The position numbers were made by a program, and so were the translations under genes. A stretch of DNA of 64,000 nt from Macrostomum lignano (Eukaryota): NCBI GenBank assembly GCA_002269645.1, contig NIVC01000150.1, forward strand, positions 558,001 to 622,000. The letters are read 5' to 3'. Below are positions 534 through 51,953 of this stretch, in pieces; within the stretch, counting starts at the first letter, position 1, and each line of letters begins with the position of its first letter. The notes under the pieces are model-generated. The model worked only from the letters and a program-made list of their open reading frames with translations, did not search any database and was not told the DNA's origin.

Positions 534-3058
534 CGTTAAATTCAGTTCCTTTAAATTTGCTGGCGAAGGCTGGCACTCGCCATTGGCATCAAGGTAGGAT
601 CGCTCGGAGCCCTCATAAGTGCTGCAGGCGTTTCGGCTGGGACTCTCCGTTGTTGAACAGGTGGCGCACGGCGTTTCTAAATGCGGTGGAGTGGTTTTCC
701 AAATTACCTTAAATTCTGGGGATTCTTATATAAATTGTAAAAATTTACCTCATTAATTACAGAGACGTAAATCTTATACGATCGATGGGGCAATCTCAAG
801 GGGATTACCAAGAGAATCGCAAGGGGAATCCTAAAGGCTATCCCAGGGAAATCCGAAAGGGTAATCCCCAGGGAAATCCGAAAGGTTATCCCCAGGGAAA
901 TCCGAAAGGGTATCCCCAGGGAAATCCCAAAGAGTATCCCCAGGGATATCCCAAAGGGTATCCCCAGGGAAATCCCAAAGCGTATCCCAGGAAAATCGCA
1001 AAGAGAATTGCAGAGGAATTCCCAAGAGAATTTCCAAGGTTTAAAGCGGAATCCCAAGTGGGAATCCCAAAGAGGAATCCCAAAGGTGAATTCCGAACGG
1101 GAATCCCAAGGGGAATACAAACTGGTGAACCCCAAAAGGAATCTCAAAGGAAACCTTCTAAGGAAATTTCGAAAGGAAATCTTTAAGGGAATCCCAGGGA
1201 AATTCCGGACCAGAATTCCCATACTGCAGAGTCCTTCAAAGAAAATCAAATGCAGGAATTCGGTGAATTGTGCGGGAAATCCCATACTACTTCGAGGGGA
1301 AATACTAAGGGAGTCGCCTTTCATTTTTGTTAAAGCATTCAGAATGAAAAGTTAAATTCATTTCGAAGATTAAATTCTAAAAGAATGCGAACAAATTCCT
1401 GGGAAATAAACTTATTCAAAATGATTTATGAAGCCAAGCAGAGAACCAAGTAAACAACATGAAGAATTTTCCAAATCCCACTTCACTTTCTTGCCAAACT
1501 CCAGACGGAATCGAACAGGTTATCCCAGCGAATGTACTTTTCATATCAATGAATAATAATTCACTGTCGGAGATGCTGAATCCACGTTTTTTAAACCAAC
1601 CACTTGCACCTTCGGATTCAGCGATATTGACTGCCTGGGCTTGCCGCATCTTACCAAGCACGCAGGCCTGTGCATCTTCCTCCTTTCAGCTTCCCTAATG
1701 TACTTTCTCCCCCGCCCGTTCTTCATCTATCAGATAGTCTTCAACCCTAGAAGGTACAGCCGAAGAAAAGTCGACGGTCACGGGATGGAAAATAGCGAAC
1801 TAAGCTTATCTATAAAATTAGTTGCATTTACAATCCAACGAATTGCTTTGGCTAAATGAATTCGATGGATAGGAAATAAAGAATTGGCTAGGGGTTAAAC
1901 TGTGCAGTCTTTATGAATTTCTTTAATCTCTTGATCATTGATTGCTGATTGCTGGACCCTTTGCAAATACTAAATATTAATTCCCTGTTGTGCCCCAGTC
2001 ATTCTCTGTGTTCCATGGTTGCTGCTTTGAGTTTCCCGACTCTGTCTCCGTCACTCTGTGACTCTCTTTGTCACTCTGTGTCACTGTCACTCTCTGTCAC
2101 TCTCTGTCACTCTCTGTCACTCTCTGTCACTCTCTGTCACTCTCTGTCACTCTCTGTCACTTTCTGTCACTCTCTGTCACTCTCTGTCACTCTCTGTCAC
2201 TCTCTGTCACTCTCTGTCACTCTCTGTCACTCTCTGTCACTCTCTGTCACTCTCCGTCACTCTCCGTCACTATCTGTCACTCTCTGTCACTCTCTGTCAC
2301 TCTCTGTCACTCTCTATGTCCCTCGATGCCATTCCTGTTTCTGTGGCCCAGTCTTCCAGTCTCCACCCAGCCTAACCGACGCTGGTGTCTCTGACAGTTG
2401 TCTCTGAGTCCACCGTCGGAGTTTCCGTCGGCTCGTCGACCAGCACGCCGGCGAATTTGATGCAGATTGGGCAGCGTCGCTCCTCGCTGACCCCTCCGAC
2501 GCTTTCAGCCAGCAGCAGGCGGAACGGGAGTTGCACCGGGGTCGCTACATCGGGGCTGACGCCCAGTACAGCCGGGTACGGCACCAGGGTGAGCGGGTCG
2601 GTCTGGTAGCTCAGCGTCACGCTGCTCACCCCGTCGGAGCCGCGGAACTCCTGGCGTCGTAGGAACTCGCAAAGCGGCAAGCCGGCACTGGGACAGGCCG
2701 GGTCGCAGGCGAACAGCGCCTTGACAGTTCGGCTCTGCAGGAGGGTCTGGCAGTGGGTGTAGGCATGCGAGCTGAGCTTGGCGAATTCCGCTGAGCAGCT
2801 TCTGGTGAGCAGCAGCTCCACCGAGGCGTTCGATCTTCGCCGACAGTCCGGCGGGTCCTGGCAGATGCTGTTGCTGGCAGCAAGGCTGTCACCAGCGGTC
2901 GCATTCTCAACTGCCCGAGCCAGCAGTTCGGCCGCGGCAGCGACGCTTTTCGAGCACATGATGTCCGAAGTTTGGTACAATAAATTTCCGGCCGCCAGAG
3001 ACTCGGCCGGTTGCCATAGCAACAGAATAATTGACAGGAGAATAGCGTAGGGCGGCAT
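534..3058 (-). CDS. Orphan Cys-rich secreted/membrane protein, 5' exons (continues beyond the left edge)
   Basis: Exon 3058-2377: MPPYAILLSIILLLWQPAESLA signal-peptide-like start, 228-aa ORF, donor G|GTTAGG in phase 1. Exon 715-534: acceptor CCCCAG, open frame EFKVIWKTTPPHLETPCATC...ELNLT, donor GTGAGT. Phases match. No family recognised. Confidence 0.65.
785..1210. repeat. Degenerate ~24-bp tandem repeat (CCCCAGGGAAATCCGAAAGGGTAT)
   Basis: Visible periodicity; accounts for the spurious ORFs at 704-1355. Confidence 0.85.
2060..2315. repeat. 10-bp tandem repeat (CTCTGTCACT)
   Basis: Directly visible. Confidence 0.95.
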
Positions 3059-18831: not shown

Positions 18832-19067
18832 ACATCTTCTTCTGTCTTCTTTTGCAAAAACTTGCAGCCCTGTTCCATTGCAGACTGAGTACTGCTATGA
18901 GGCTTAAATCGGTCGTATCAAGTGTTGACTCTCAAGCTTCGAGACGAAGAAGAATTTGCAAATCTGATTGACTTACGAGCGTATTTATCCTCGAACTCTT
19001 TTTATTTCATTGGCAAATTTTTATCAGAACTTTTAATTAGAAGTACTTTTAGTTGTAGTCCTCTCCG

Positions 19068-19290
19068 AGCTGCTTTTGTACTTTTAGTAGCTGAAGTTAT
19101 TCACTGAGCTGCTTTTGTACTTTTAGTAGCTGAAGTTATTCACTGAGCTGCTTTTGTACTTTTAGTAGCTGAAGTTATTAACTGAGCTGCTTTTGTACTT
19201 TTAGTAGCTGAAGTTATTCACTGAGCTGCTTTTGTACTTTTAGTAGCTGAAGTTATTCACTGAGCTGCTTTTGTACTTTTAGTAGTTTAA
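19068..19290. repeat. 39-bp tandem repeat (GAGCTGCTTTTGTACTTTTAGTAGCTGAAGTTATTCACT)
   Basis: Directly visible. Confidence 0.92.
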
Positions 19291-19715
19291 AGTACTCTTG
19301 TACTTATAGTACTTGTTCCCATAACTTTTTCTGTACTTTTAGTAGCTGTTCACTGAGCTGCTTTTGTACATTTACCAGGGTAGTACAAGCTAGTGAAAGT
19401 ACAAGTTTAAAGTACTCTTGTAATTTTAGTACTCGTTCCCTCAACTTTTTCTGTACTTTTAGTAGCTGTTAATTGAGCTGCTCTTGTGACGCACGAATCG
19501 ACGGGTCTTCAATAAGAAAAGAAAGCAAACTCGCTACTCGATTTAATCGAAAATATTTTATTTATGATTTGGTTAGAGACGGAAATCAGTCAAATTGAAG
19601 GGATACGGGCAGGTAAGCAAGCATCAGGCGGAGCCATACTAAACATCAAGCATGATTTTTACACGGGGCCTTGTACAGAACTTGATATGAACCACAGTGC
19701 GCCCGTCGGCCACTG

Positions 19716-22700
19716 TCACATCGGAGTCGCTTCCTCCGCTTCAGCCTCGCCTTCCGCCTCTTCGTCGAGCCTGTCGCTGCCGGCCTCCTGGCACCAGAGC
19801 CGACGATTGTTGATTATCCCGGATCCGTTATTGCCAGGAGCTTCCGTTGCTCCACCGCCCACGGATGCTTCGTCCAGCGTCGCCGCGTGCAGCGTCTCGA
19901 TGGTGATCGGCCTGGACATTGAGCAGCCGCCCGACCCACCCGACTGGCCGCCAGCAGTCGGCGTGGTGGCCGCGCTTCCGCCGCCGACGCCGCCGCCGCC
20001 GCCGCCGCCTTCGACGCCGCATTTCCGGTTGTGCTGTCGATAGTAGGACTTCAGGTCCAGCTGGCGGCCGAACTCCGCCTCTTTCTTCTGCCTGTCGTAT
20101 TTCCAGTTGCGCTCCACAACTGTGCCAGAGGAATAGGGCAGAGAGAAAGTGAGGCAAATGGCGGAGTGAGGGGTGGTGGAGTGAGGTGGGTGGCGGAGTG
20201 AGTTGGGTGGCGGAGTGAGGGGTGGCGGAGTGGGGTGGGTAGCGGAGTGAGTCAGGTGGCGGAGTGAGGTGGGCAGCGGAGTGGGGTGGGTGGCGGAGTG
20301 AGGTGGGTGGCGGAGTAAAGTGGGTGGCGGAGTGGGTTGGGCGGCGGAGTGAGGTGGACAGCGGAGTGGGGTGGTTGGCGGAGTGAGTCAGGTGGCGAAG
20401 TAAGGTGGGTAGCGGATTAAGGTAGGTTGCGTAATAAGGAGTGAGGTGGATGCATGTAGTTAAAACATTTACCTCAATTGAGAATCGTTTACCTTAGCTC
20501 ATTTTGCCCCCAGAAAAGTGCGATTCAACTATGAAAATATTTGCAATTTTGACATTCTAGACAGAAGCATACTTTTCATAATAGCAGGATTCAATTCATT
20601 CTTACACTTCTGCATTTAACGCAATCCAGCCTAGAAGCTCCGTTCACACCACTAAATTTAAAATAAGTAGACAATATTGGGTAATTTCTCAGTCACTCAC
20701 ATTTGTAATTGGGATTCCTCGGTTTCCAGTACACCTTCTCCCAGATAAGCAGGGCTAAAAAGATGGCCAAGAATATGCCCGCCACAATTCCCAGGGCGGC
20801 GTTGCTGGTGGAGAACAGGCTCTGGGCCACCTCCTCAGCCACCTCGGAGCTCTGGCCCGCCTGCCATGAGGGTGGAAAGCAATAAATCTGTTTTTTTTAT
20901 ACTTAAGCGCACTCACCCACTACATGCGCCTATAAACCCTAATCTAGACACCCACCTCACTCCCTGCACCTATAGATCTTCATCTAGCCACCTACCCTAC
21001 TCCCTGCCCCTATAGACTCTCATCCAGCCACCCACCTCACTCCTTGCCCCTATAGACCCTCATCCAGCCACCCACCTCACTCCTTGCCCCTATAGACCCT
21101 CATTTAGTCACCCACCTCACCCCCTGCCCCTATAGACCCTCATCTAGCAACCCACCTCACTCCTTGGCCCTATAGACCCTCATCTAGCAACCCACCTCAC
21201 TCCTTGGCCCTATAGACCCTCATCTAGCAACCCACCTCACTCCTTGCCCCTATAGACCCTCATCTAGCCACCCACCTCACTCCTTGCCCCTATAGACCCT
21301 CATCTAGCCACCCACCTTACTCCATCTCAGCTTCCTACCTGGTCGGCCCCATGCGTGTGGCCTACAATTCTGCGATAGACGTTGATCTGCTCTCTGAGGA
21401 TTGTGGCAGCCAAGCAGCTGTTGACTTCTGTGCCCAAGTTTGAGTACATTCCTCTGAGTGAGGGCCTTTTGAGCACGTACTGCGGCTTAATCCGATTCAT
21501 TCTATCCTGATGCTCCTCGCGCAGGTGCAGGTACATGTAGTGCTCGATCAGTGCTCCGTGATGTCGGGCCTCCGACTCTTTGTCTTCCGTGAAGTTGCTG
21601 CGGAGCAGACTGCGCCAGTCGCTGATCACTGAGGTTTTGAAGTTTTTTGAGCACGAAAAAGCTCACCAAATGCTCACTGCCTCACATTGGGCTTTATTAT
21701 CACATCCACCCACTCCTTGCCCTCAGAGCCTCATCCAGCCACCAATTTCACTCCTTCACACTTCATCCCACATTAATATCAACTCTTCAGTCAGATACCC
21801 ACCTCACTCCCTTTCCCACATCAACTCAGTCAGACACCCACCTCACTCCCTTTCCCACATCAACTCAGTCAGACACCCACCTCACTCCCTTTCCCACATC
21901 AACTCAGTCAGACACCCACCTCACTCCCTTACCCCATCAACCCCTCTGTCAGACACACACCTCACTCCCTTCCCCACATCAACTCCTCAGTTAGACACCC
22001 ACCTCACTCCCTTACCCCATCAACCCCTCTGTTAGGCACCCACTTCACTCCCTTCCCCACATCAACCCCTCAGTCAGACACCCACCTCACTCTCTACCCA
22101 CATCAACCCCTCTGTCAGACACCCACCTCACTCCCTACGCACATCAACCCCTTAGTCAGACACTCACCTCACTTCATACCCCAAGCAATTCCTAAAAGCG
22201 AAAATCTCCACAGAGTGCACGGAAAACTTTTTTAAAGTAGCAACTCACAAACGGGTGTCGAGCCTAGCTCATAAACAAATATTTGTTCATACGACCCGTT
22301 GATAACAGTGATCTGAAATGAATTAATTCAACAAATCTAGGTTAGGCAAGAAACGAGATTAAACTTAAATGACTAATTTCTCAGTAAACTTTAAAATACA
22401 AGCTATAAGATTTTTTCTTGAACAGCTGTCGCCGCCCAGACCAGAGACTGGAAGTCGTGGTTGTACTTTATTAAAATTAGAAAAATTTGCATAAAAAAGC
22501 GCCCAGTCCATTGCAGACACTGCTGGCTAGGCTATGATATCTAAAATGACTGTACACCAAGCCACTATTTAGTACATTGTAGAGACGAAAGCAGGGCGAA
22601 AATGAAAAATGAGCAGTGCCTGTTTTCAGCACTCTATACGTGTAATTGCACAGATAATAACGGTCCCAAATCTCCAAGGCAAACGTCTCCTGAAAAGCAG

Positions 22701-23241
22701 CACCAACAGCAGGGCTCTGGTTTCGCTGTCTGCAGAGATTACAGCTGATTGATGGCCGGTGGGGATCAACACTGCCGCTCCCCCTGCCATCAGTTGGATT
22801 GATAGGCGGGGGGATCACAGGACAAAGCAGAACCTCAAGTATATATTGGAGAAACAATGCATTTTTTCTGTTTGATGCGGCATCTTGGAATGAAAGCTTT
22901 TATATTTCCTGAAGATTTTCTTTAGGAAGGGGGGGCGATCGGCAGGCGGCCCCTGGGTCAGACTGAAAGACCTTTTCCTTCGGCTCTTCTACTTGGCAAC
23001 AGCTGGCTTTCCTCTTTTGGACGGCGCTGGGGGCTCCGGGGTGCGGACACGGGCGGTCAGACTGCAAGACGACACCGCCGGAAAAAAGAAACTCGCGGGC
23101 TTAGCAGGCGGGGCGAGGGAATTCGGGATGGCAAAGTGTGGGAGACGCTGCTGCACTGCTGAGTGTCTTCATTTGAATCATTGGGTCTGTTTGATGGCCC
23201 CTTGACCTGGTTTCCTGGTTGACTTTCTGTCTGTCTGTCTT

Positions 23242-23282
<41 letters not shown>

Positions 23283-23283
23283 G

Positions 23284-23374
<91 letters not shown>

Positions 23375-26300
23375 GTGTCTGTCTGTCTGTCTGTCTGTGT
23401 GTCTGTCTGACTGTCTGTCTGTCTGTCTGTGTGTCTGTCTGACTGTCTGTCTGTCTCCAGTCCTCAGGCCGTCCATATTGGCAGTAAAGGACTCGCTGTG
23501 CCGAATCAGTGCAGCAAGGCGCCTAACGACTTGGACGGCAGCAATAAAAGTCGGTCCCGCTTGCATGCATGGCCGACAATCAATACAAATGCGCCAGCTG
23601 GGCCGCTGTTTCAAGCGCAGAAATCTGCTGTTTGACTGATGAGGGAAAGAGTGAAAGATTTGCACCCAGCTTCACTCCCATCAGCCTAAATACTCTTATT
23701 CATGCCCTGAGTGTTGAAATCTTCAGCTTGAAATCAAATATTTTCAATCTTGATCTTCTGTTAGCCACCTGAATCTCATTCTCTTCAGCCACCTGAATCT
23801 CATTCTCTTCAGCCACCTGAATCTCATTCTCTTCAGCCACCTGAATCTCATTCTCTTCAGCCAACTGAATCTCATTCTCTTCAGCCACCTGAATCTCATT
23901 CTCTTCAGCCACCTGAATCTCATTCTCTTCAGCCACCTGAATCTCATTCTCTTCAGCCAACTGAATCTCATTCTCTTCAGCCACCTGAATCTCATTCTCT
24001 TCAGCCACCTGAATCTCATTCTCTTCAGCCACCTGAATCTCATTCTCTTCAGCCACCTGAATCTCATTCTCTTCAGCCACCTGAATCTCATTCTCTTCAG
24101 CCACCGGAATCTCATTCTCTTCAGCCACCTGAATCTCATTCTCTTCAGCCACTTGAATCTCATTCTCTTCAGCCACCTGAATCTCATTCTCTTCAGCCAC
24201 CTGAATCTCATTCTCTTCAGCCACCTGAATCTCATTCTCTTCAGCCACCTGAATCTCATTCTCTTCAGCCACCTGAATCTCATTCTCTTCAGCCACCTGA
24301 ATCTCATTCGCTTAAGCTGAGCTCAGGGCTCACATTGGTCTGAAAGAACCGGCTGTCCTCCTCGGTCTGAGCGCCCTGACTCAGAGCGGTGGTCACCCCC
24401 GCGGTGAACATGGAGATGAGCACCAGCCCGAAGCTGATCCAGGCCATGGCGAACAGCCGGCCGCAGATGGTCTTCGGCGAGCGGTCGCCGTAGCTGCGGG
24501 ATCGAGGGGATTGTTATGGGAGGAGGGGTCATGAGACCTCGTTTAGATCTGAGACTGGTTAGAAAGATTGCGATAGGAAAGAACAGAAATTTGACCTTTA
24601 ACTGGTCTGGAAGGTCTAGATGACTTAACTATCTACTCTAAGGGATCACATGACTTCGGATGACCTTCAACTGGTCTGAAAGGTCTAGTTGATGTATCAT
24701 ATATTCTGAGGGGTCACGTGACTTCGGATGACCTTCACCTGGTCTGAAAGGTCTAACTGATTTTACTATCTATTCTGGGGGGTCACATGACCTCTGATGA
24801 CCTGCAACTAGTCTGGAAGGTCCTGGTGACATGCCCTCTGCCCTCCACTTTGATAATATGCCGACTTGGAAATATCAGAATGAATTTGAAAAGGGATTCG
24901 AAATGACTTCCTATAGGACCCAGATGCACTTCGAAGTAGTTTAATAGAAAAATAATTTCCAAACGAAGTTAGAACTTTAGGATGTTTTTCATCATTCCAA
25001 CCAAGCTTCCGTTTTTATCTCTTTGTCGGCAGGCAAGCGAAGGAAGCAGCTCTCAATCTGTCTATTCAGTGCTTTCTTTATTCACGTTTCCGTTGCCGTC
25101 TCGGTCTCAGACGGCAGGTAGCAGAGCCAAGGAACCAGAGTCAGTGCCCTCAATCCAACAGCAGAGAGCGACGGCTGATGAATTATTAATTTGTCAAGAA
25201 ATCGGCAAGAACCCTCTGAGTGGAAGGGATAAGTGGGTGCTGACGGAGAGCAGAAATCTATGGATTCGATTTATTCCTCGAGTGGGGGGACGGCTGGGAG
25301 ACCCCCGGGCTCTCAAGTATGCGATCGATTAATGCTACCCGCCAGCGGTGAGGCAGGTAGAATAAGCGAATAAACGACAGAATTTCTGGCTGCATATATT
25401 TTTTTTCAAAAAAATGCGAGACAATGGCTTAAAGCCCCTGATCTCGCCTTACCCCACAGTTGTCATGGTGATGAAAGCCCACCACCAGCCTTCCCAGAAG
25501 CCGCGAACAAAAGGCCTGGGAAATTCTTGGGGATTTCTCAGCCTCTCCTGCGGGTGGGCAGATGCGGGGCGAGAGTGATGAGGCGTATTCTGCATGCTTA
25601 GTAAAGAAAAGCTCCCAGCCAGTGCACTATTTTTCTGCAGTTGAATTCTTTTGCACTATAAAACTTGGTTTTGCACAACATTTGATCTGGTCATTGGGTT
25701 TCCCACTGTGGTTTATTACTCATTCCTCTGGCTCATTTTACTGAATCATTCCATGGATTCATTCCTCAATAACTCATTCCTCTGACTCATATCTTTATGA
25801 CTAATTCCTCTGAATCATTTCTTTATGACTCATTCCTCTGACTCATCTCTTTATGACTCATTCCTCTGACTCATCTCTTTATGACTCATTCCTCTGACTT
25901 ATCTATTTATGACTCATTCCTCTGACTCATCTCTTTATGACTCATTCCTCTGACTCATCTCTTTATGACTCATTCCTCTGACTCATCTCCTTATGACTCA
26001 TTACTGAATGACGCATCTTATATCCTCCAAATGCCCCCTATAACCTAAGAGTTAGCAAAAATTAAATTCAATCCATTCACTACAAATTCTAACAAAACTT
26101 TTTGAGATGACGCCAGACCTCACCATGAACCAGACAAGCACTGCAGCGAATGAGCAGGAGACAATGATGATGAGCAGCAGAGGCCAGGCCTGTCCAATGA
26201 CTCTCAGCTGCGGCATGCTGGTCTGGTGCGGACCCGCTGGCGGATCCAGCCACACGGCGCCTAAGAAGAGGAGCAGGGAGGAAGGTTTCAAAGGGGGGAT

Positions 26301-28826
26301 CTTAATTGAATCTAAAAATAGCGCGATCCCGTTCAGCTCACAGCCAATTAGAGAGCGGCTCTAGGGATGGGGTGTGCAGAGTGTACATTTACTGTGGTTA
26401 CTGGATGAACGGGTATGAAGACGCAGTCTAAAAATAGCATTCGTGTACAACTGAGAGCCTATAAAAATAAAGCGTTGGGGTTGACTTTACCGAATGTACA
26501 AGCATAGACAGATCACGTGATCTGCAATTCGATTGATGCACGTGATACACGGCCCTAAACAGATCGAAAACGCGATTCGAAAGAAGGCCTGCTCGAAATT
26601 TTCCTTGTTAAAAAAATTTTACTGGTACGTAACGAAGCAAACCCGGAAAATTCAATAGAATAAAAGACAAGGAAATCTCATTTGGACATCTGTAAACGAA
26701 TTAGTGCTAATTTGATTAGAAATGTGCCTCAAGAAACTGAAGGCTTTGCAGACAAAACGATGAGATTCGATTAATCTGCTTGACTAAACTCCGAAGCGCA
26801 AGTTCCAAGTTCTTTAAGTACAGCCGTGAATAATAAAAAGCTTTGGCTTTCCCAAGCAAATCGATTCCCATGGCTCGAACGGCTTGAATCTATAATCGAT
26901 TAAAACAAAAGCACTTCCTTAAGTCTGAGCCTTTTTTTCCTCTTTGAACAAGCAGGACAGCAATTTTCGGAGCTCTCCAGAGTTCACCGAGGTCAGCGCA
27001 TGGATTAGCCTGCTAACATTCCGGCAGCAATTGACAAACGTCACTGCAGCTTTCCTAACTTTCCACCCCGATAAGCCGGGATTTCGCCCTCCAGGCTCCC
27101 AAGGCCTGTCCAAAAAGTCGACCCAAACAGTTTGAAAGTGCCAGAAGAGGAGAATAGGGGGGGGGGGGCGCTGGCATATGTCCCCTTTGAACTGCATTTT
27201 TTCGGCCAGTTTTTCAAAGCCTGCTTTTATCACAGCTGTGCTTTGGCCTCTCCCCCTCTGCTGCATCAGCCAAACAAGTGGGGTGTAAACAGTCCACCGA
27301 AAGGCAATTTAGCCAACTGCACTGCAGTTTTGCTTTCGCCAGCTGCAAGTGGAAAGCCGTATATAATTGCGCAGAACGAATAGAGGAGCTTTCGAACCAG
27401 AGAAATGGGAAAGGGATCGAAGCGTGTGGAGCGTTGACGTTTTGAAAGATGACCGGGTCACAGGTGGCTGGGCAAGAGTTACTGTTAAAGACGAATTGCA
27501 AAAGCACGCAACTCAAACGAGGCACTAGGACTCCGTTGCTACGGGGATAGGGAAATGAAGATTTCGAATCTCGAGTTAACCGGAGTAGAAGGGGGTTAAT
27601 AAAGATTTATGAGGCAACGCTGTTACTTCGACAGACGGATGAGATGAAGGAAAGTTACGAGTAAATGCAAAATCTCAATTATTGAACAGGTGTGCTAGTA
27701 GGGTCAGCTGACACTCGCGCCGCGATCCCTGGTTCGATTCCGTGTTAATGCAAATTCATTTGGGGCTTCTGTGCACTAAAATTGGGCAGTGGGGTTGTTG
27801 TGCGATTCGCAGCAGTGAGGGACAACCCCACCCCAAGGCACAGAGAGTGTACAGTGAGGGACAACCCCACCCCAAGGCACAGAGAGTGTACAGTGAGGGA
27901 CAACCCCACCCCAAGGCACAGAGAGTGTACAGTGAGGGACAACCCCACCCCAAGGCACAGAGAGCGTACAGTGAGGGACAACCCCACCCCAAGGCACAGA
28001 GAGTGTACACGCCTGACGATTAGAACGCCAGGGCCGCTGTTGACCCTGTGTGAGCGTGTGAGTGCCTGGGTACACTATTGGCGCTCAGGAGACAGCAGAA
28101 TGGGCAGAATTGCCTCAGCACTGGTTTGTGGGACGATGTCACTGAAGTCGTTGCGCTAGAGTGCCCCTCAGCCCTCCTGCCAATATTTATTTTATTTTGG
28201 ATTCATTTTTAGAGCCGCATAACTTTATCGCGGAGTTCGAACTGAACTTTTCTCAAAGTCGTAGCATTAAATTTAATCAGACGAGTAAAATTGAGTCTCC
28301 AGGTACGTCTGAAGCGAGTATGTCAGGTCTTCAAATATTAATAAATTTCAATATTTAATAACTTCCAGACCAGATTTTGGAAGATGCAGGACAACAAACA
28401 ACAACAGGATGAGACAACAAGATCAGGTGACCAAAAGAGCAGAGAATCGGGGGAAGTGGGGTTCAGTGAAGCACAGCTGGAACCTCACCTGGCGAGCTCA
28501 CAACCGGAATGAATGCGGTGTCGAGCGCCAGCCGACTAAGGAGCGGCGTGCCCGTGACCGGGAAGCTGAGGTTGCACTCAGCCAGACCCTGGCGCAGCAG
28601 TTCGTCTTCGTTCTGATAGCGTCGAAGGCGATATTTTGGTGAAGGTGTTGAATCAACTTTATCGCTAGCTAAACAGTCAGCGAGGGTCTCTTTGGCGAGG
28701 TTCCAGAACACGCCTTCGGTGTGGCCGTGTACCAGATCGGCGAATGGCGGGTGGCTGAAGTAGCCGATAGTTATTTCGGGTCCACTGGCTGTCATGCCAG
28801 TAGAGGACAGACCAGCGGTTGGGCAC
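19716..28826 (-). CDS. iGluR-architecture ligand-gated channel with K+ selectivity filter TTVGYGD (GluR0/AvGluR1-like); signal-peptide exon not located
   Basis: Exons 28826-28489 (S1), 26260-26124 (M1), 25547-25453 (pore helix [12 protein letters not shown]), 24493-24334 ([37 protein letters not shown]), 22312-22249 ([10 protein letters not shown]), 21628-21339 (S2, GALIEHY), 20860-20701 (M4) and 20119-19716 (tail). All are GT-AG, phase-consistent and stop-free. Confidence 0.88.
20160..20420. repeat. G-rich degenerate minisatellite (GGTGGCGGAGTGAG)
   Basis: Directly visible; intronic. Confidence 0.85.
20950..21325. repeat. 40-bp minisatellite (CCCACCTCACTCCTTGCCCCTATAGACCCTCATCTAGCCA)
   Basis: Directly visible. 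Confidence 0.92.
21780..22170. repeat. ~39-bp C-rich minisatellite
   Basis: CAGTCAGACACCCACCTCACTCCC...CACATCAAC repeats. Confidence 0.88.
23225..23455. repeat. (TCTG)n microsatellite
   Basis: Directly visible. Confidence 0.96.
23765..24308. repeat. 24-bp minisatellite (CAGCCACCTGAATCTCATTCTCTT)
   Basis: Directly visible; source of the AEENEIQV pseudo-ORF. Confidence 0.96.
25740..26005. repeat. 28-bp minisatellite (TGACTCATTCCTCTGACTCATCTCTTTA)
   Basis: Directly visible. Confidence 0.9.
27690..28065 (+). mobile_element. tRNA-derived SINE with an internal 39-bp tandem expansion (x5)
   Basis: B-box GGTTCGATTCC at ~27731; unit CAGTGAGGGACAACCCCACCCCAAGGCACAGAGAGTGTA repeated at ~27813-28008; tail shared with 6912-6980. 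Confidence 0.65.
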
Positions 28827-28894
28827 CTTGAATTGCGATTTATTTTTTTGTTTGGAGTGAGACGATAAAAACCATAGAATAAAACTTTATTAGA

Positions 28895-29255
28895 CCAGCC
28901 AATCAGGAGGAGTCTAGTGCAGAGAATCATTAAATGGAGCTGTTCTGGGCCAGCCAATCAGGTGAAGGAGGAGTGAGGTGGCGGTTAGCCTAGTGAAGAG
29001 AACCATAGAACGGAGCTGTTTTAGGCCGGCCAATCAGGAGAAGGAGGAGTGAGGTTGCAGTGAGCCTAGTGCAGAGAACCATAGAATGGAGCTGTTTTAG
29101 GCTAGCCAATCAGGAGAAGGAGGAGTGAGGTGGCGGTCAGTCTAGTGCAGAGAACCATAGAATGGAGTTGTTTTAGACCAGCCAATCAGGAGAAGGAGGA
29201 GTGAGGTGGCGGTCAGCCTAGTGCAGAGAACCATAGAATGGAGCTGTTTTAGCCC
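28895..29255. repeat. 76-bp tandem repeat (CCAATCAGGAGAAGGAGGAGTGAGG...)
   Basis: CCAATCAGG recurs at 29030, 29106 and 29182. Confidence 0.9.
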
Positions 29256-30039
29256 GAATGTTTGAGGTGCGGAAAATCGTGAAGCAATTTAGTTTTATGT
29301 AGATAAAGCAAGTGAAAGAAAAGGAAAGGACACATAGAATTTTCTCCTTAAACGACAGAGATAATCGGATGTAAATAAATGCAGGAAAGTCTGCTGGTTA
29401 CAATTTACAGACAGTTACAAAACCATACCTTGTTTTAGCTGACTCGCGCCTATGTTTGGTTAGGGAAAATTCGATTTTAAGATAAGCCTCTCTGATTGCC
29501 CAACAGTTAAAAAAGCTAGCAATGGTTCTGGTTTATAGTGAATCGGTTTGGTTTGCTCTCTACTACGCAAAGAATTCAAGCCCTGCTTTCATTGGCCGCT
29601 GTCTCGATGCAGCCAATCATATTCAGTCGATGGAGAGACTATTGAAAAAATTGGAAGTCCACTTTTAGCTAAGTCTTTTTCGATTGTAAATTTTATAAGA
29701 ACTGTGTGCAGTGTCTTGTCTTTTTTGTATGAATTGTGCCAGGAAAGCAAGCAGCTCTTTCCTGCTGAAAGTCTCACACTACAACAGAGGCAAAATAAAG
29801 AAATTTATTCGGGTCTAAAGAAACGCAGGCTGACAGTAGGGGTTGAGGCTTCAGAATATTCTGGATTAAAGCGGATTTGGCCTCAGATCTCCGCGCGGAG
29901 ACAGAAAGATGGAGTCAACATTCTGACAGCTGGTTAGAGTAACTGCCATTCTAGTTAGGCATATAATTCGTCCTGTTGTTTATTAAATATTACCGACAAA
30001 AAATTCAAGAGAGCTCTAATTCGGAATAAAATCAGGATG

Positions 30040-31012
30040 AGAGGCGCCAAAATCGGGGTAAGAGGCGCCAAAATCGGGGTAAGAGGCGCCAAAATCGGGA
30101 TAAGAGGCGCCAAAATCGGGTAAGAAGCGCCAAAATCGGGGTAAGAGGCGCCAAAATCGGGGTAAGAGGCGCCAAAATCGGGGTAAGAGGCGCCAAAATC
30201 GGGGTAAGAGGCGCCAAAATCGGGGTAAGAGGCGCCAAAATCGGGGTAAGAGGCTCCAGTATCGGGGTAAGAGGCGCCAAAATCGGGGTAAAAGGCGCCA
30301 GTATCGGGGTAAGAGGCGCCAAAATCAGGATGAAGGCGCCAGTATCGGGGTAAGAGGCGCCAAAATCGGGGTAAGAGGCGCCAAAATGGGGGTAAGAGGC
30401 GCCAAAATCGGGATAGAGGCGCCAAAATCGGGGTAAGAGGCGCCAGTATCGGGGTAAGAGGCGCCAAAATCGGGGTAAAAGGCGCCAGTATCGGGGTAAG
30501 AGGCGCCAAAATCAGGATGAAGGCGCCAGTATCGGGGTAAGAGGCGCCAGTATCGGGGTAAGAGGCGCCAAAATTAGGATAGAGGCGCAAGTATCGGGGT
30601 AAGAGGCGCCAGTATCGGGGTAAGAGGCGTCAAAATCAGAATAAAGGCGCCAAAATCGGGGTAAAAGGCGCCAGTATCGGGGTAAGAGGCGCCAAAATCA
30701 GGATAGAGGCGCCAGTATCGGGGTAAGAGGCGCCAAAATCGGGGTAAGAGGCACCAAAATCGGGGTAAGAGGCGCCAGTATCGGGGTACAGTAAGAGGCG
30801 ACAAAATCGGGGTAAGAGGCGCCAAAATCGGGGTAAGAGGCGCCAAAATCGGGATAGAGGCGCCAAAATTGGGGTAAAAGGCGCCAGTATCGGGGTAAGA
30901 GGCGCCAAAATCAGGATAAAGGCGCCAGTATCGAGGTAAGAGGCGCCAGTATCGGGGTAAGAGGCGCCAAAATCGGCATAAGAGGCGCCAAAATCGTGGT
31001 AAGAGGCACCAA
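30040..31012. repeat. 21-bp minisatellite (ATCGGGGTAAGAGGCGCCAAA)
   Basis: Directly visible. Confidence 0.96.
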
Positions 31013-37674: not shown

Positions 37675-38157
37675 TCACCCAATCGGATTGACCACCCGAA
37701 ACCTGCCAATATTTCGCTTGCATCGGTCAAATGCTTCATCTGTGAGCCTGCAGGACAGCGCAAAATATGTGGCATTGTTACTCAGCATCCGGTGGTCAGT
37801 TTCTCCAATCCGATCCCTAGCCAGCTTCACTGTCTCCTCATCCGGTCTGCAATCTGCCAAGTTAAATCTGTACAATCGAAAGTGACCATTGGCTGTATTG
37901 GTAGAATCCAGAGTTATATTCTCTTGTAGCACAGAGATTGCTTCAAATAGGTCTCGACGTCCATAGTGAATAACTCGAACTGTCACTGGGGGGCTGTCCT
38001 CTGATGAGTCAGACTCCAGGCTGGATAAAATGCTCTCAACTAAGTAGGGATGCCAGAACATGTAATAGGAGTTCTCAATGATGTCGCCTGGTTTTAGTGC
38101 TCGGGCCAGCTCCATAGTGAGGTTAACTAGCTGATAGGGTGCATCAGCATCTGCCAT
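37675..38157 (-). CDS. LRAT/PLAAT (permuted NlpC/P60) family protein, intronless, catalytic Cys absent
   Basis: LKPGDIIE..Y..FWHP, VIHY, LYRFN, EETVKLARDRIGE, LSNNATYFALSCR (family consensus NNCEHF..CR). Confidence 0.82.
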   Translation of the reverse strand: MADADAPYQLVNLTMELARALKPGDIIENSYYMFWHPYLVESILSSLESDSSEDSPPVTVRVIHYGRRDLFEAISVLQENITLDSTNTANGHFRLYRFNLADCRPDEETVKLARDRIGETDHRMLSNNATYFALSCRLTDEAFDRCKRNIGRFRVVNPIG

Positions 38158-42141: not shown

Positions 42142-42920
42142 ATGGAAGTAAACAAGCAAAAAATGGAATCCGACTGTAATAGCAGATTACAGAAGAGGCG
42201 AATCGAAGGCCAGTTCTGCTGCGCCCCGGGATGCAGAAATTCCTCAAAGAATACACGCGGCCTTAGCGTTTCGTTTCACGCTTTCCCCAAAGACGAGGAC
42301 AGGAAAACCAAATGGTTGGCAGCGCTGAACAGGAAAGACTTCAAGCCATCCGCTTCCTCCAAACTATGCTCTGAGCATTTCGTGCTGGATTGCTTTAAAG
42401 AGCAGATGGAAGGCTTTCAGCCAAGTACCAGAAAGAGGCTGTATCCGAATGCTGTGCCGTCAATCTTTACGACTTCATCCGCCATGCGCCGTAGAAGTAA
42501 GCATGAGCAGCAGGGTGCAAAATATCGCTTCGAGAAATAGAGTTCTCAGTCTTCACGGAATCAGAGGATCGTAGCCCAGCTTGTTCCTTTATTGTTAGTG
42601 CAAAACAACCTGATAAAATAAAGAAGTCCAAATCAAATATTTGCTTCCCCGAGCCAGAAATATTCAACGAAAATACAGTCAGAGCTGAAATTTCACCTCG
42701 ACAGACAACTGGCATTGGTGATGGTAAGTTGAAGTACATCCTTTTAGTGCTAAATGTGGACATATTTTTCATGCTCCATCTTATAACCATTACAGAATCA
42801 TATGTTTTTGAATTACCCTCGAAAAATTGTAGAATATTTATATTTTCATTTTCCAATTGTTTGATTATTCTGCTTCGATTCACTCATTATTCAATTTCAA
42901 CAAGCTTGAGCTATAGCTAG
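42142..42920 (+). CDS. THAP zinc-finger domain protein
   Basis: C-x4-C...FH.FP...W...LCSEHF...AVPSIF in exon 42142-42496 (donor GTAAGC). Probable exons 42541-42723 (44-nt intron, donor GTAAGT) and 42796-42920 join in frame. No transposase domain seen. Confidence 0.8.
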
Positions 42921-43720: not shown

Positions 43721-45618
43721 ATGGCATCTACTTCTGAAGTCGAACAAACACCAGTTGCTAATGGTACCGAGAGCATCCCTTCAATAGAACTGTTTATTAA
43801 GGTAAGCAAACTGTACTTACTCTCTGTGTTAATAAAAAGGTGCATTAGCTCGTAAACATGCTTTACTCTACTTGCTTCATTTTTAGGAATGAATAAAATG
43901 ACAGTTTAACAACATTTTTTAACTCATACCATCTGCTATCCATATCAAAATTAAATCCATAATTAACTTGGATTTAAATGCATTTTTTGTATTCCAAATA
44001 TCATTTTAGCTATTTGTATCTATAGTTTTTTAAGCAATATATCATGTATTGAGTTTTAATTGTAAAACATTGTTGAAGATCTATTTTCGATACTGCATAT
44101 ATCATAGCATATTTATTGTTGAATGATAAAGGATATTTTAAATTTATGTGTAATTTGCATGGCTGAATTTAAAAAATGCCGAATGCAAATCACAAGTGAT
44201 AAAAAATGGAAATACAATTTTTCTCTGCAGGCCTCGCAGATCGCTCGCGAAGAGAAAGGTCCCTGCCCAATCAGCCAGCAATGGATTCTGGCATTCTACA
44301 TCCTGGCCGAGAAGAAACTCACTGAGCTTTACTTGACCACCGTAAACCCGGATGTGCCACCTGATTCTTACCTGGCCTTGAATGTCAGCCGCCGCCTACC
44401 AGTGGCCAATGTGACAAAAGGCCCCGATCCCAGGCTCAAGACGAGTAACGCCGCCGACGCTCCCGACCCTGCCGACACAAACGACGAGATCGAGCAGCTG
44501 ATGGACGCTTTCCGCTGTCCCAACTTGGCCCTGCCGAAAGACTCGCGAGACGAAGCCAACGCCGAGAAGGCCATCTGCGATCTGTACAAAAACTTCAGCC
44601 TCATGCTCAAAACCGACAACCGGGCGCCGTTGATCAACTCGCTGCGCAAGATCGACAACTTCCTGGGGCTGCGGCCGTGCCGTTATCTGCTGTCAGATGA
44701 GCTTACCTATGCCGACTGCCAGCTCATGCCTAAGCTGCATCACGTCAGACTGGCCGGAGAGGTAAATCTGATCCGAGAGGTCGGACCAGCCTCTCCTAGA
44801 AAACTGGAACTGAACTCGACCTGCACCCTACCTTGCACGACTTTTGCCCTACCCTACACTCGACTTCCGCCCTACCCTAGACAGTCCTACACTCGACCTC
44901 CGTCCCACCCTAGACACTTCGGGGCTTGGGGTTGGGCCTTTTGTCACATTGGCCGCCGAAGTGTCTAGGGTGGGACGGAGGTCGAGTGTAGGACTGTCTA
45001 GGGTAGGTCGGAAGTCGAGTGCAGGGTAGGGCGGAAGTCGAGTGCAGGGTAGGGCGGAAGTCGAGTGCAGGGTAGGGCGGAAGTCGAGTGCAGGGTAGGG
45101 CGGAAGTCGAGTGCAGGGTAGGGCGGAAGTCGAGTGCAGGGTAGGGCGGAAGTCGAGTGCAGGGTAGGGCGGAAGTCGAGTGTTGGGTAGAGCGGAAGTC
45201 GAGGGTCGAAGTATAGGGTAGGGCGGAAGTCGAGTGTTGGGTAGAGCGGAAGTCGAGGGTCGAAGTATAGGGTAGGGCGGAAGTAGAATGTAGGTTCAAT
45301 TACAGTTTCCAGGAAAGGCTTCTTCTACTTCAATTGTCCACCTCGTGAATGAGATAACCCTCACCGCCTCGTTCCCAGTTCTATCGAGGCTTCACCATCC
45401 CGGAGGAGCTTCGCCACCTTCAGGACTATCTGGTTGGCATGTACACCGCCTGCGACGCCTTTCGCACCAGCTGCCCGGCAGACCGGGACATTCTGCACCT
45501 GTACTACGACAAGGTGCCGCGGTCACTGCTGTCCAGCATCAGAGCCCAGCCAACGCTGATGGACAACCGCCGCACCCTGCTAGGTGAGAGCGGTGGCACA
45601 GGCGGCATCCCCTACTGA
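43721..45618 (+). CDS. CLIC: Chloride intracellular channel (CLIC/EXC-4-like, GST fold)
   Basis: Exons 43721-43801 (IELFIK), 44231-44761 (GPCPISQ..., LTTVN, YLLSDELTYADCQLMPKLHHVR) and 45379-45618 (FYRGFTIPEEL...TSCPADRDIL), phase-consistent. Confidence 0.92.
44815..45290. repeat. 23-bp minisatellite (GTCGAGTGCAGGGTAGGGCGGAA) in inverted arrangement forming a hairpin
   Basis: Arms ~44851-44922 and 44956-45028 are reverse complements. Confidence 0.9.
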
Positions 45619-50452: not shown

Positions 50453-51953
50453 ATGAGTCGAGCCTCCAAGCTAGTATCCTACCGGGCTCTGTCTCGAGTG
50501 ACGCCTTCCAGAGCTGGTCAGATTCGCTTCAACAATGCAGCGTCTTCTGCCACGACGACTGCCGCCTGTACCATCGTGTCTCCGGCACCCTCGCCGTCGA
50601 TGGCCTGCTCGCACTACTACAACCAGGCTGCTGTGGACGCGGCTGCTGCTAAGAATTCTGTACGCCTCACCCCGGCTTCGCTGCTGTACTCAGGCCGAGC
50701 CGCAGACAGCCATCAGGTGCTCCGCTCCGCTCAGTATCTGCAGCGCGAACTGCCAGTCCGCATCGCCCATCGAGTGGCCGATTTTCGAGCCCTGCCATTC
50801 GTTGTTGGCTGCCATCCAACCCTGCTAGCGGTGCACGAGCTCTACCTGCGGGCCTTCCACATTCTGTCAAATACGCCGAGTCTGACTGAGCCCGAGGACG
50901 AGATCCAGTACTCTGGCCTGCTGCGCCAACTGCTCGACGAGCACAAGGACGTTGTGACCATGCTGGCCGAAGGATTCCGCGAGTGCGGCCGACACGTTCG
51001 TGACTCCGGCCTAGTGAGAACCTTCCTAGACAGGACCCTGACCTCTCGTCTGGGCATCCGGCTGCTGTGCGAGCACCATCTGGCCCTGCGGCAGGAGAAG
51101 CCAGACTTTGTCGGCATCGTCGGCACCAAATTCTGCCCGGGCGACCTCGTTGAGAGTCGCGCCGCCCTTGTTACCCGAATGTGCGACATGAAATATGGCC
51201 AGTCGCCGACAATTCGGGTTGACGGCAACGGCAGTAAAGCGGCTTTCTCCTACATCCCGCAGCCGATTGAGTACGTGCTCACCGAGCTGCTGAAGAACGC
51301 ATTCAGAGCCACTGTGGAGTTCCATCGGGGTCGCCCTGGCCCGGTGCCCGAGGTTCGAGTCACGGTCGCTAACAACGATGTCGACTTTGTTATTAGGTAG
51401 GAAAAAGAAAAATTTTAATGAAACTTTCTCACCATCTTACTTGAATTTCAAAGTAGCGCAAACCGCGTTTTTTATAATTTTTTATGCAGTTATATTTTGC
51501 TACAAATCTGTCGTTAAAATTGCCATGAAGTATAGCTCTACTCACAGATAATCAAACCAAACTCATTAATTTAGAAAGCCGATATGTATAGAAAAGAAGT
51601 TTTTATGAAGATATGAACAGATTCTATTATCATGAAATTCCACGCCTATTATAATTTGCAGAATCAGCGATCAAGGCGGTGGAGTGCCTCACGAAATTTT
51701 CGACAAAATTTTCGACTACAACTTCTCTACTGCCGAGGCCAGCGAGCAGCACGAGTCATTCTTTGACCGAGTCTCCGAGTCGCGCTCGTCGTCCAGCTCA
51801 ATGCACGGATTCGGCTTCGGCCTGCCGGCTTCCCTGGCCTACGCCAAGTACCTCGGCGGCGCGCTCACCTTCGAGACGATGCAGGGCGTCGGTTCGGATT
51901 TCTACCTGCGCCTGCGGCACATCGACGGCCGAGGTGACACCTTCAGAATCTGA
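50453..51953 (+). CDS. BCKDK: Branched-chain alpha-ketoacid dehydrogenase kinase (PDK/BCKDK family)
   Basis: Exons 50453-51396 and 51662-51953. Motifs [87 protein letters not shown]. Confidence 0.95.

Follow-up and report, generated by a model that had tools for sequence, protein, structure and literature searches.

An eight-exon Macrostomum lignano gene for a probable ligand-gated K+ channel subunit of an uncharacterised metazoan iGluR/GluR0 branch

A stretch of 64,000 nucleotides from the flatworm Macrostomum lignano (contig NIVC01000150.1, positions 558,001 to 622,000 of the forward strand; "the window" below means this whole stretch) was analysed, following an earlier note which had described on its minus strand a hidden gene for a glutamate-receptor-like channel with an intact K+ selectivity filter. 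Three-frame translation of positions 19500-29300 showed that eight minus-strand exons, extending from 28795 to 19716, join in frame into a coding sequence of 1617 nt, that is 538 amino acids and a stop codon. All of the introns start with a GT donor and end with an AG acceptor, and their phases are 1, 0, 2, 0, 1, 0 and 1. The domains of the product follow each other in the order S1, M1, pore helix and filter (TMTTVG/YGD, where the slash marks an exon junction, as in the motifs below), M3, S2, M4 and tail. S1 occupies approximately residues 5-105, M1 residues 127-148, M3 residues 190-217, S2 approximately residues 230-345 and M4 residues 372-392, and the tail of 146 residues is first basic, then Gly-rich and finally acidic. 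The product begins 5 residues ahead of the first S1 strand and no Pfam domain was found N-terminal to S1. The eight exons and their joining in frame were as the earlier note had given them, and every motif quoted there was recovered in the product (S1 including YFSHPPF, M1, the filter, M3, S2 including NSCL, M4 and the Gly-rich acidic tail). Its length estimate of about 550 residues was too high, and the start which it had placed at 28826 is out of the coding frame, the first usable ATG being that at 28795. The coordinates are collected in Table 1.

Table 1. Positions of the channel gene exons and of associated features in the window.
Feature	Position	Strand	Content
Tandem repeat, 76-bp unit, 4.5 copies	28914..29252		Directly upstream of exon 1; holds the in-frame ATG 28930
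Exon 1	28489..28795	-	ATG 28795 and the S1 half of the ligand-binding domain, residues 1-102; donor GTGAGG, phase 1
R88	28532..28534	-	Arginine encoded in exon 1 (S1)
Exon 2	26124..26260	-	End of S1, pre-M1 and M1 (26189-26124); phase-0 donor
Exon 3	25453..25547	-	Linker NPQEFPRPF between M1 and pore, then pore helix and the filter's first half; stops within a Gly codon, phase 2
89-nt segment of intron 3	25086..25174	-	AG/GT borders, phases as exon 3; stands in for the pore-helix exon in P0208
Exon 4	24334..24493	-	Second half of the filter (YGD), M3 (24465-24382) and M3-S2 linker; phase-0 donor
Exon 5	22249..22312	-	Start of S2; phase-1 donor
Exon 6	21339..21628	-	Main part of S2 with E283 (21545-21543) and NSCL; phase-0 donor
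Exon 7	20701..20860	-	S2-M4 linker, M4 (20800-20738; from hydropathy) and basic onset of the cytoplasmic tail; phase-1 donor
Exon 8	19716..20119	-	Cytoplasmic tail and stop codon 19718-19716

The introns had been called repeat-filled, and tandem repeats indeed map to them: a 24-bp unit is repeated 23.5 times at 23756-24317, TCTG 58 times at 23226-23456, a 41-bp unit 9.7 times at 21778-22173 and a 40-bp unit 10 times at 20910-21323. Upstream of the gene a 21-bp unit is present in 46 copies (30028-31000), and the introns and flanks with such arrays span 19067-31000. Minisatellite-like arrays give rise to long spurious open reading frames throughout the window.

The closest database match of the product is itself a Macrostomum lignano protein. 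The UniProt entry A0A1I8GZG6 (398 amino acids; P0208 in our numbering) is 100% identical to the window across the exon interiors, and its C-terminus is 100% identical to exon 8. Because of this identity and the common C-terminus the entry is assigned to the same locus, of which it is, judged by the alignment, a mis-spliced model. One of its errors is the use of a cryptic GT donor within exon 4 (at about 24397), by which 21 amino acids at the M3 end and in the linker are dropped; two others, in exons 1 and 3, are taken up below. The same cryptic donor is used in the near-identical entries A0A1I8GB00 and A0A1I8G7B1. The 89-nt segment which P0208 carries in the place of exon 3 had no similar sequence among the family members examined, and probably reflects an error of gene prediction or an isoform without function. 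Thus the gene was hidden in the sense that the complete channel is absent from the annotation, although the locus as such had already been annotated, and the eight-exon model amends what is annotated at this place in M. lignano.

Every junction of the model is spanned without interruption in some paralog or homolog protein. The junction SSPG/AVWL is spanned by the paralog P0003 (RTPGAVWLGPSAGPH), WFM/ERL and TVG/YGD by the paralog P0021 and by hemichordate proteins, and FFQTN/ITV(INGSY) by the paralog P0022, while P0001 and P0208 cover the last three. P0021 (A0A1I8J4Y3) is another M. lignano protein, 53% identical to the 538-residue product across 437 core positions; in its gene model it runs together with an SGF29 tudor fragment. 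It carries two insertions of 65 and 53 amino acids, which are probably introns retained in the prediction, since they are located exactly at the positions of introns 1 and 4 of the window gene.

The exons of three relatives, from Glandiceps, Nematostella and Ptychodera, were mapped onto the respective genomes. In the Glandiceps gene (L001) there are six introns, of the phases 0, 2, 0, 1, 0 and 1, at the positions of flatworm introns 2-7, among them the phase-2 intron which splits the filter; two of the six are offset by one residue relative to the flatworm, within poorly conserved stretches. Nematostella LOC5517927 (L003) shares flatworm introns 2-6, i.e. the first five of the Glandiceps six, again with the phase-2 filter intron, and in the Ptychodera model, which stops short of M4, four introns coincide in position with flatworm introns 2-5. 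The phase-0 intron after M1 is common to all four genes, the phase-1 intron after exon 5 recurs in Glandiceps and Nematostella, unchanged in position and phase, and the one extra intron found in the flatworm alone is intron 1, which follows SSPG. Since intron positions and phases are common to the flatworm, the hemichordates and Nematostella, the gene is, on this evidence, ancient and vertically inherited, dating at least to the cnidarian-bilaterian ancestor. The conservation of the introns also argues against a chance or mis-assembled gene model. The same conservation of intron positions, extending over three phyla, led us to dismiss a recent horizontal transfer from bacteria.

A hidden Markov model built from 100 non-flatworm members of the family matched residues 7-418 of the product as a single domain (270.7 bits, E 1.6e-84); therefore the gene model is not a chance match. 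Profile search of 1.84 billion cluster representatives gave 393 with E<=1e-30, and nearly all of the best 150 of these (E<1e-62) reach from S1 to M4. The family comprises at least 150 full-length cluster representatives. Among the named members there are cnidarian proteins from Nematostella (many paralogs, LOC5501882 and LOC5517927 among them), Hydra (LOC100206068), Clytia, Montipora, Stylophora and Dendronephthya, which bears out the mention in the earlier note of similar unannotated proteins in cnidarians; the others are from the hemichordates Saccoglossus (LOC102804213), Ptychodera and Glandiceps and from M. lignano. All of the named members carry generic labels such as "uncharacterized protein" or "potassium channel domain-containing protein". 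Many Logan contigs of 2.2-2.6 kb encode complete family proteins and, judging from their length, look like assembled transcripts. In a neighbour-joining tree without support values, a crude one which serves as an indication only, the metazoan family was set apart from five bacterial GluR0-like proteins, and the two flatworm sequences stood beside those of the hemichordates.

Further features were noted in single groups of the family. In some cnidarian members, such as Nematostella P0034, P0036, P0044, P0049 and P0058, the channel module lies at the C-terminus of a protein of 1400-4600 amino acids. The ectodomains of these giant proteins consist of FN3, Ig or F5/8C domains in the place of the amino-terminal domain (ATD) of ionotropic glutamate receptors (iGluRs), and one of the proteins has been automatically named "sidekick-1"; they may be true fusions or merged gene models. 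A pair of cysteines in the first S1 helix (positions 70-71 of the Saccoglossus protein P0008), often within CCGxC, occurs in 93 of 101 members, and the flatworm protein has a single Cys there, C41 being followed by L42.

The product carries the complete K+-channel signature, namely the two tryptophans of the cuff and TTVGYGD with the flanking Asp. In the Pfam search Ion_trans_2 was recognised with 58.2 bits (7.9e-16), Ion_trans was found too, and Lig_chan (PF00060) passed its cut-off marginally (31.4 bits against 30.8). Thus, of the three domains which had been proposed for a HMMER check, Ion_trans_2 was clearly and Lig_chan marginally present, and SBP_bac_3 was not detected. In the PDB the best sequence matches were the pores of Lmo2059, KcsA and Kv/KCNQ, with which WW..T.TTVGYGD lines up at every residue. 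In the alignment of 101 members, the columns of the filter were occupied by T in 99, V in 95, G in 101, Y in 99, G in 101 and D in 99 sequences, and the cuff tryptophans were present in 100 and 98. Since filter and cuff are near-invariant, the alignment indicates selection for a K+-type filter, and we infer from it that the channel would be K+-selective. M3 of the product does not contain SYTANLAAF, and the pore has no non-selective loop of the Q/R/N type.

Searching the PDB with the full-length sequence returned K+-channel pores only, and the ligand-binding domain (LBD) surfaced solely when a pore-less S1-GT-S2 profile of 19 members, the 538-residue product included, was used. This profile matched AncQR (2.4e-7) and, almost over its full length, the LBD of GluR0 (1iit/1ii5, 7.5e-7); GlnPQ, a second bacterial iGluR LBD and LAO-binding proteins were among the further matches. 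No eukaryotic iGluR LBD and no AvGluR1 LBD appeared among the PDB matches at E<=10. In hhalign the family and the bacterial GluR0-like channels formed one colinear alignment of 287 columns, which runs from S1 across the pore into S2 (probability 99.9, E 2e-36), and S2 alone aligned to the bacterial S2 region with E 9e-7. As far as profile comparison goes, the binding domain is shown to be of the GluR0 or bacterial amino-acid-binding-protein type. The S2 acidic residue which binds the alpha-amino group is D or E in 84 of 101 members, E283 in the product, and the G-S/T turn which opens S2 is kept as well, as N238-G-S.

Structures were predicted with AlphaFold2 for the Saccoglossus homolog P0008 and for the flatworm paralog P0021, and the product was placed in the fold by alignment. 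The P0008 model had a mean predicted local distance difference test score (pLDDT) of 87.8 and a predicted template modelling score of 0.75. In Foldseek its best PDB matches were chains of GluA1 and GluA2 comprising LBD and transmembrane domain (TMD) and a GluN chain (E ~5e-13, ~430 columns of the 440-residue query). In the P0021 model the pLDDT was about 90 in S1, TMD, S2 and M4, the order of strands and helices was the same as in P0008, and the best Foldseek match was again the LBD-TMD chains of GluA2 (E 1e-7). The earlier note had made its case dependent on S1 and S2 modelling as a binding-protein clamshell, and for these two, the closest sequences folded, a bilobed fold was in fact predicted. 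Residues 372-392 are hydrophobic (M4) and are followed by a K/R-rich tail; the G..(W)E at the M4 end is conserved in the family, and the Foldseek alignment covers M4. Cnidarian members have Ig or CUB domains N-terminal to S1, two hemichordate members start with hydrophobic leaders which by eye resemble signal peptides, and the product has four N-X-S/T sites in S1 and S2 and a K/R-rich stretch after M4. Because of these N-terminal domains, leaders, sites and basic residues the sequences fit an iGluR topology, in which the clamshell would lie outside, the pore loop would be re-entrant from inside and the tail would be inside.

Taken as a whole, the locus probably contains an intact M. lignano gene for one subunit of an ancient, uncharacterised metazoan branch of the iGluR/GluR0 superfamily, which would act as a ligand-gated K+ channel. 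The identity of the protein is well established as regards its gene structure, its family and its architecture; its mode of action, ligand-gated, K+-selective and hence inhibitory, we infer by reasoning from these. Four subunits would form a channel with iGluR topology, with S1 and S2 building the extracellular clamshell, the pore loop re-entering from the cytoplasmic side and M4 and the tail leading inward. A small extracellular ligand would shut the clamshell, closure would pull on the M3 helices, and the K+-selective pore would open, hyperpolarising or shunting the cell.

The observations that weigh against this interpretation are set out here with the other explanations of the data. S1 alone, aligned to the S1 of GluR0-like proteins, was placed correctly with a non-significant E of 0.08. 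Neither SBP_bac_3 nor Lig_chan-Glu_bd was detected by Pfam in the product or in three other members scanned. The clamshell was predicted for one homolog and one paralog, and gating by a soluble ligand has been assumed by analogy. The S1 arginine which holds the alpha-carboxylate group ("TAxRE"), invariant in 4 of 5 aligned bacterial relatives, occurs at the homologous offset in 2 of the 101 family members and is missing in the other 99; R88 of the product lies two residues past the canonical position. Since this arginine is not conserved, the ligand of most members is probably not a standard alpha-amino acid such as glutamate. It could be that the clamshell no longer binds any small transmitter, and that the protein works as a leak K+ channel, or as one regulated in some other way, whose LBD-derived domain serves as a structural, adhesion or protein-interaction module. 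The missing arginine, the failure of the Pfam SBP models to recognise the domain and the large adhesion-type ectodomains of many cnidarian members (Ig, CUB, FN3, F5/8C; the "sidekick-1" protein is one) would agree with such a role. However, the bilobed fold was predicted with high confidence for both the homolog and the paralog, the product has kept the S2 acidic residue and the G-S/T turn, and amino-acid binding proteins are still found with the LBD profile. We therefore regard a clamshell without a small ligand as unlikely.

A GYG filter alone is no guarantee of K+ selectivity. The protein might be a real member of the family which conducts cations non-selectively in spite of its GYG, in which case its activation would depolarise the cell. 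The inverted, iGluR-type pore provides a context unlike that of the classical K+ channels, and M3, as read from the sequence, has neither the glycine-hinge context of K+ channels nor SYTANLAAF. On the other hand, the whole signature, i.e. the WW cuff, TTVGYG and the Asp, is near-invariant in the 101 members, a pattern not easily accounted for unless a K+-type filter is under selection, and GluR0 and AvGluR1, which have the same signature, reportedly select or prefer K+ (PMC12332018, PMC12226733). Non-selective conduction is accordingly improbable in our judgement.

The remaining objections concern the gene model. No signal peptide was found at the N-terminus of the 538-residue model, a convincing upstream exon was looked for and not found, and the 5' end is provisional. 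The in-frame ATG at 28930, in the last copy of the 76-bp repeat, would prepend MILCTRLLLIGWSNK..., which makes a poor signal sequence. Since the signal peptide and S1 share one exon in the Ptychodera and Nematostella genes, homology gives no pointer to an upstream exon; hemichordate members have merely a short hydrophobic leader ahead of S1. In addition, P0208 is without exon 1 (S1), and in it the pore-helix exon 3 is swapped for the unrelated 89-nt segment 25174-25086. That the locus is a decaying or non-functional copy, whose real transcripts follow the annotated splicing without a pore helix, would accord with the missing signal peptide, with P0001, P0207 and P0208 (from this or near-identical loci) lacking exon 3 or starting after it and with the 21 amino acids deleted at the M3 end by the cryptic donor, but it is very improbable given that the eight exons are open without exception and have canonical splice sites throughout, that exon 3 is 77% identical to hemichordate proteins along its length, that filter and pore helix are identical to those of P0021, and that the database models look like automated predictions, the insertions of P0021 falling exactly at intron positions.

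Elsewhere in the window, a 132-residue open reading frame at 42142-42540 (+) encodes a clear THAP zinc-finger domain (Pfam E 3.9e-22) and is probably transposon-derived or an exon of a THAP gene. A 315-residue open exon at 50453-51400 (+) encodes the N-terminal domain of a mitochondrial branched-chain ketoacid or pyruvate dehydrogenase kinase (BCDHK_Adom3, E 5.6e-41) and belongs to a neighbouring gene. The 281-residue reading frame at 44123-44968 (+) matches a GST C-terminal-like domain weakly (E 2.5e-4, short of the Pfam cut-off) and has a CLIC/GST-like look, and its end enters a repeat. Two non-repetitive reading frames, 2372-3058 (-; 228 amino acids, with a hydrophobic N-terminus) and 37675-38157 (-; 160 amino acids), gave no Pfam match and may be exons of unknown genes.

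The textbook origin of the iGluRs is the fusion of a binding protein with an inverted K+ channel, as in GluR0, with M4, the tail and the ATD acquired later. The order in which these three were added is unsettled (PMC12551409), and the only animal "intermediate" in the literature found was the rotifer AvGluR1. The family described here is a large, vertically inherited metazoan one, in which a GluR0-type LBD and an intact K+ filter are combined with M4 and a tail already in place and with no ATD, and it makes both the order of domain acquisition and the timing of the loss of K+ selectivity testable. As a tentative proposal, possible rather than probable, it may represent a living stage of "GluR0 plus M4 plus tail, without ATD": inhibitory ligand-gated K+ receptors of cnidarians, hemichordates and flatworms, with ligands other than alpha-amino acids, the ATD being replaced by adhesion ectodomains in cnidarians. 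If this were true, it would add a class of fast inhibitory chemoreceptors or neurotransmitter receptors which, apart from AvGluR1, was not found described for animals in the searched literature. Natural inhibitory K+ channels gated by extracellular ligands would be relevant to cnidarian and flatworm neurobiology, and they might be a starting point for chemogenetic silencers, for which engineered K+-selective iGluRs are already in use.

Full-text literature searches, which did not cover subscription papers, returned no description of this metazoan family, and it is not mentioned in the large metazoan iGluR phylogenies of the searched literature, where GluR0 (bacterial, without M4) and AvGluR1 (rotifer) were the only iGluRs with a K+ signature to be discussed. 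No characterised ortholog was found, close orthology to a characterised receptor having been named in the earlier note as an outcome that would speak against its proposal. The family thus appears to be an uncharacterised metazoan clade of the iGluR/GluR0 superfamily beyond GluR0 and AvGluR1, although an earlier description outside the searched literature is possible. The proposal of an animal branch combining a GluR0-like pore and a short N-terminus with M4 is backed by the Pfam, hhalign, LBD-profile and AlphaFold2/Foldseek results alike.

GluR0 (Synechocystis Slr1257) and the bacterial GluR0-like channels resemble the product in their S1-M1-P-M3-S2 order, in the lack of an ATD and in the TXVGYG filter, and the similarity extends to the sequence of the LBD (the match to 1iit/1ii5 and, for the bacterial relatives, the full profile-profile alignment given above). 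In contrast to GluR0, the product has M4 and the 146-residue tail in addition, and its gene is metazoan, with introns that cnidarians and bilaterians have in common. The "T-x-x-R" arginine of 4 of the 5 bacterial relatives is not conserved in the metazoan family, which in turn has motifs of its own, namely CC in S1 and NPxEFPRPF where M1 is linked to the pore helix. AvGluR1 of Adineta vaga is, like the product, an animal channel of the iGluR superfamily with a K+ signature and M4 (PMC12332018). It was described with the full eukaryotic architecture including the ATD (PMC12332018), whereas the product starts directly at S1 and its LBD is of bacterial type; AvGluR1 is gated by amino acids. Orthology to AvGluR1 was rejected, since the product has no ATD and its LBD profile gave no match to that of AvGluR1 at E<=10.

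The LBD-TMD parts of the AMPA, kainate and NMDA receptors are the best structural matches of the homolog and paralog models, Foldseek aligning them from S1 through M4. The M4 end of the product presumably resembles the "LIEF" end of iGluRs such as GluA2. Compared with these receptors, the product is without an LIVBP-like ATD, without SYTANLAAF and without a Q/R/N-type pore, and its Lig_chan match is marginal. With the pore modules of KcsA, Lmo2059 and the Kv channels it shares the pore helix and filter (WWAxxTxTTVGYGD) residue for residue. Unlike in the 2TM or pore-only K+ channels, however, the pore of the product splits a binding-protein fold, precedes M4 and would be inverted in the membrane.

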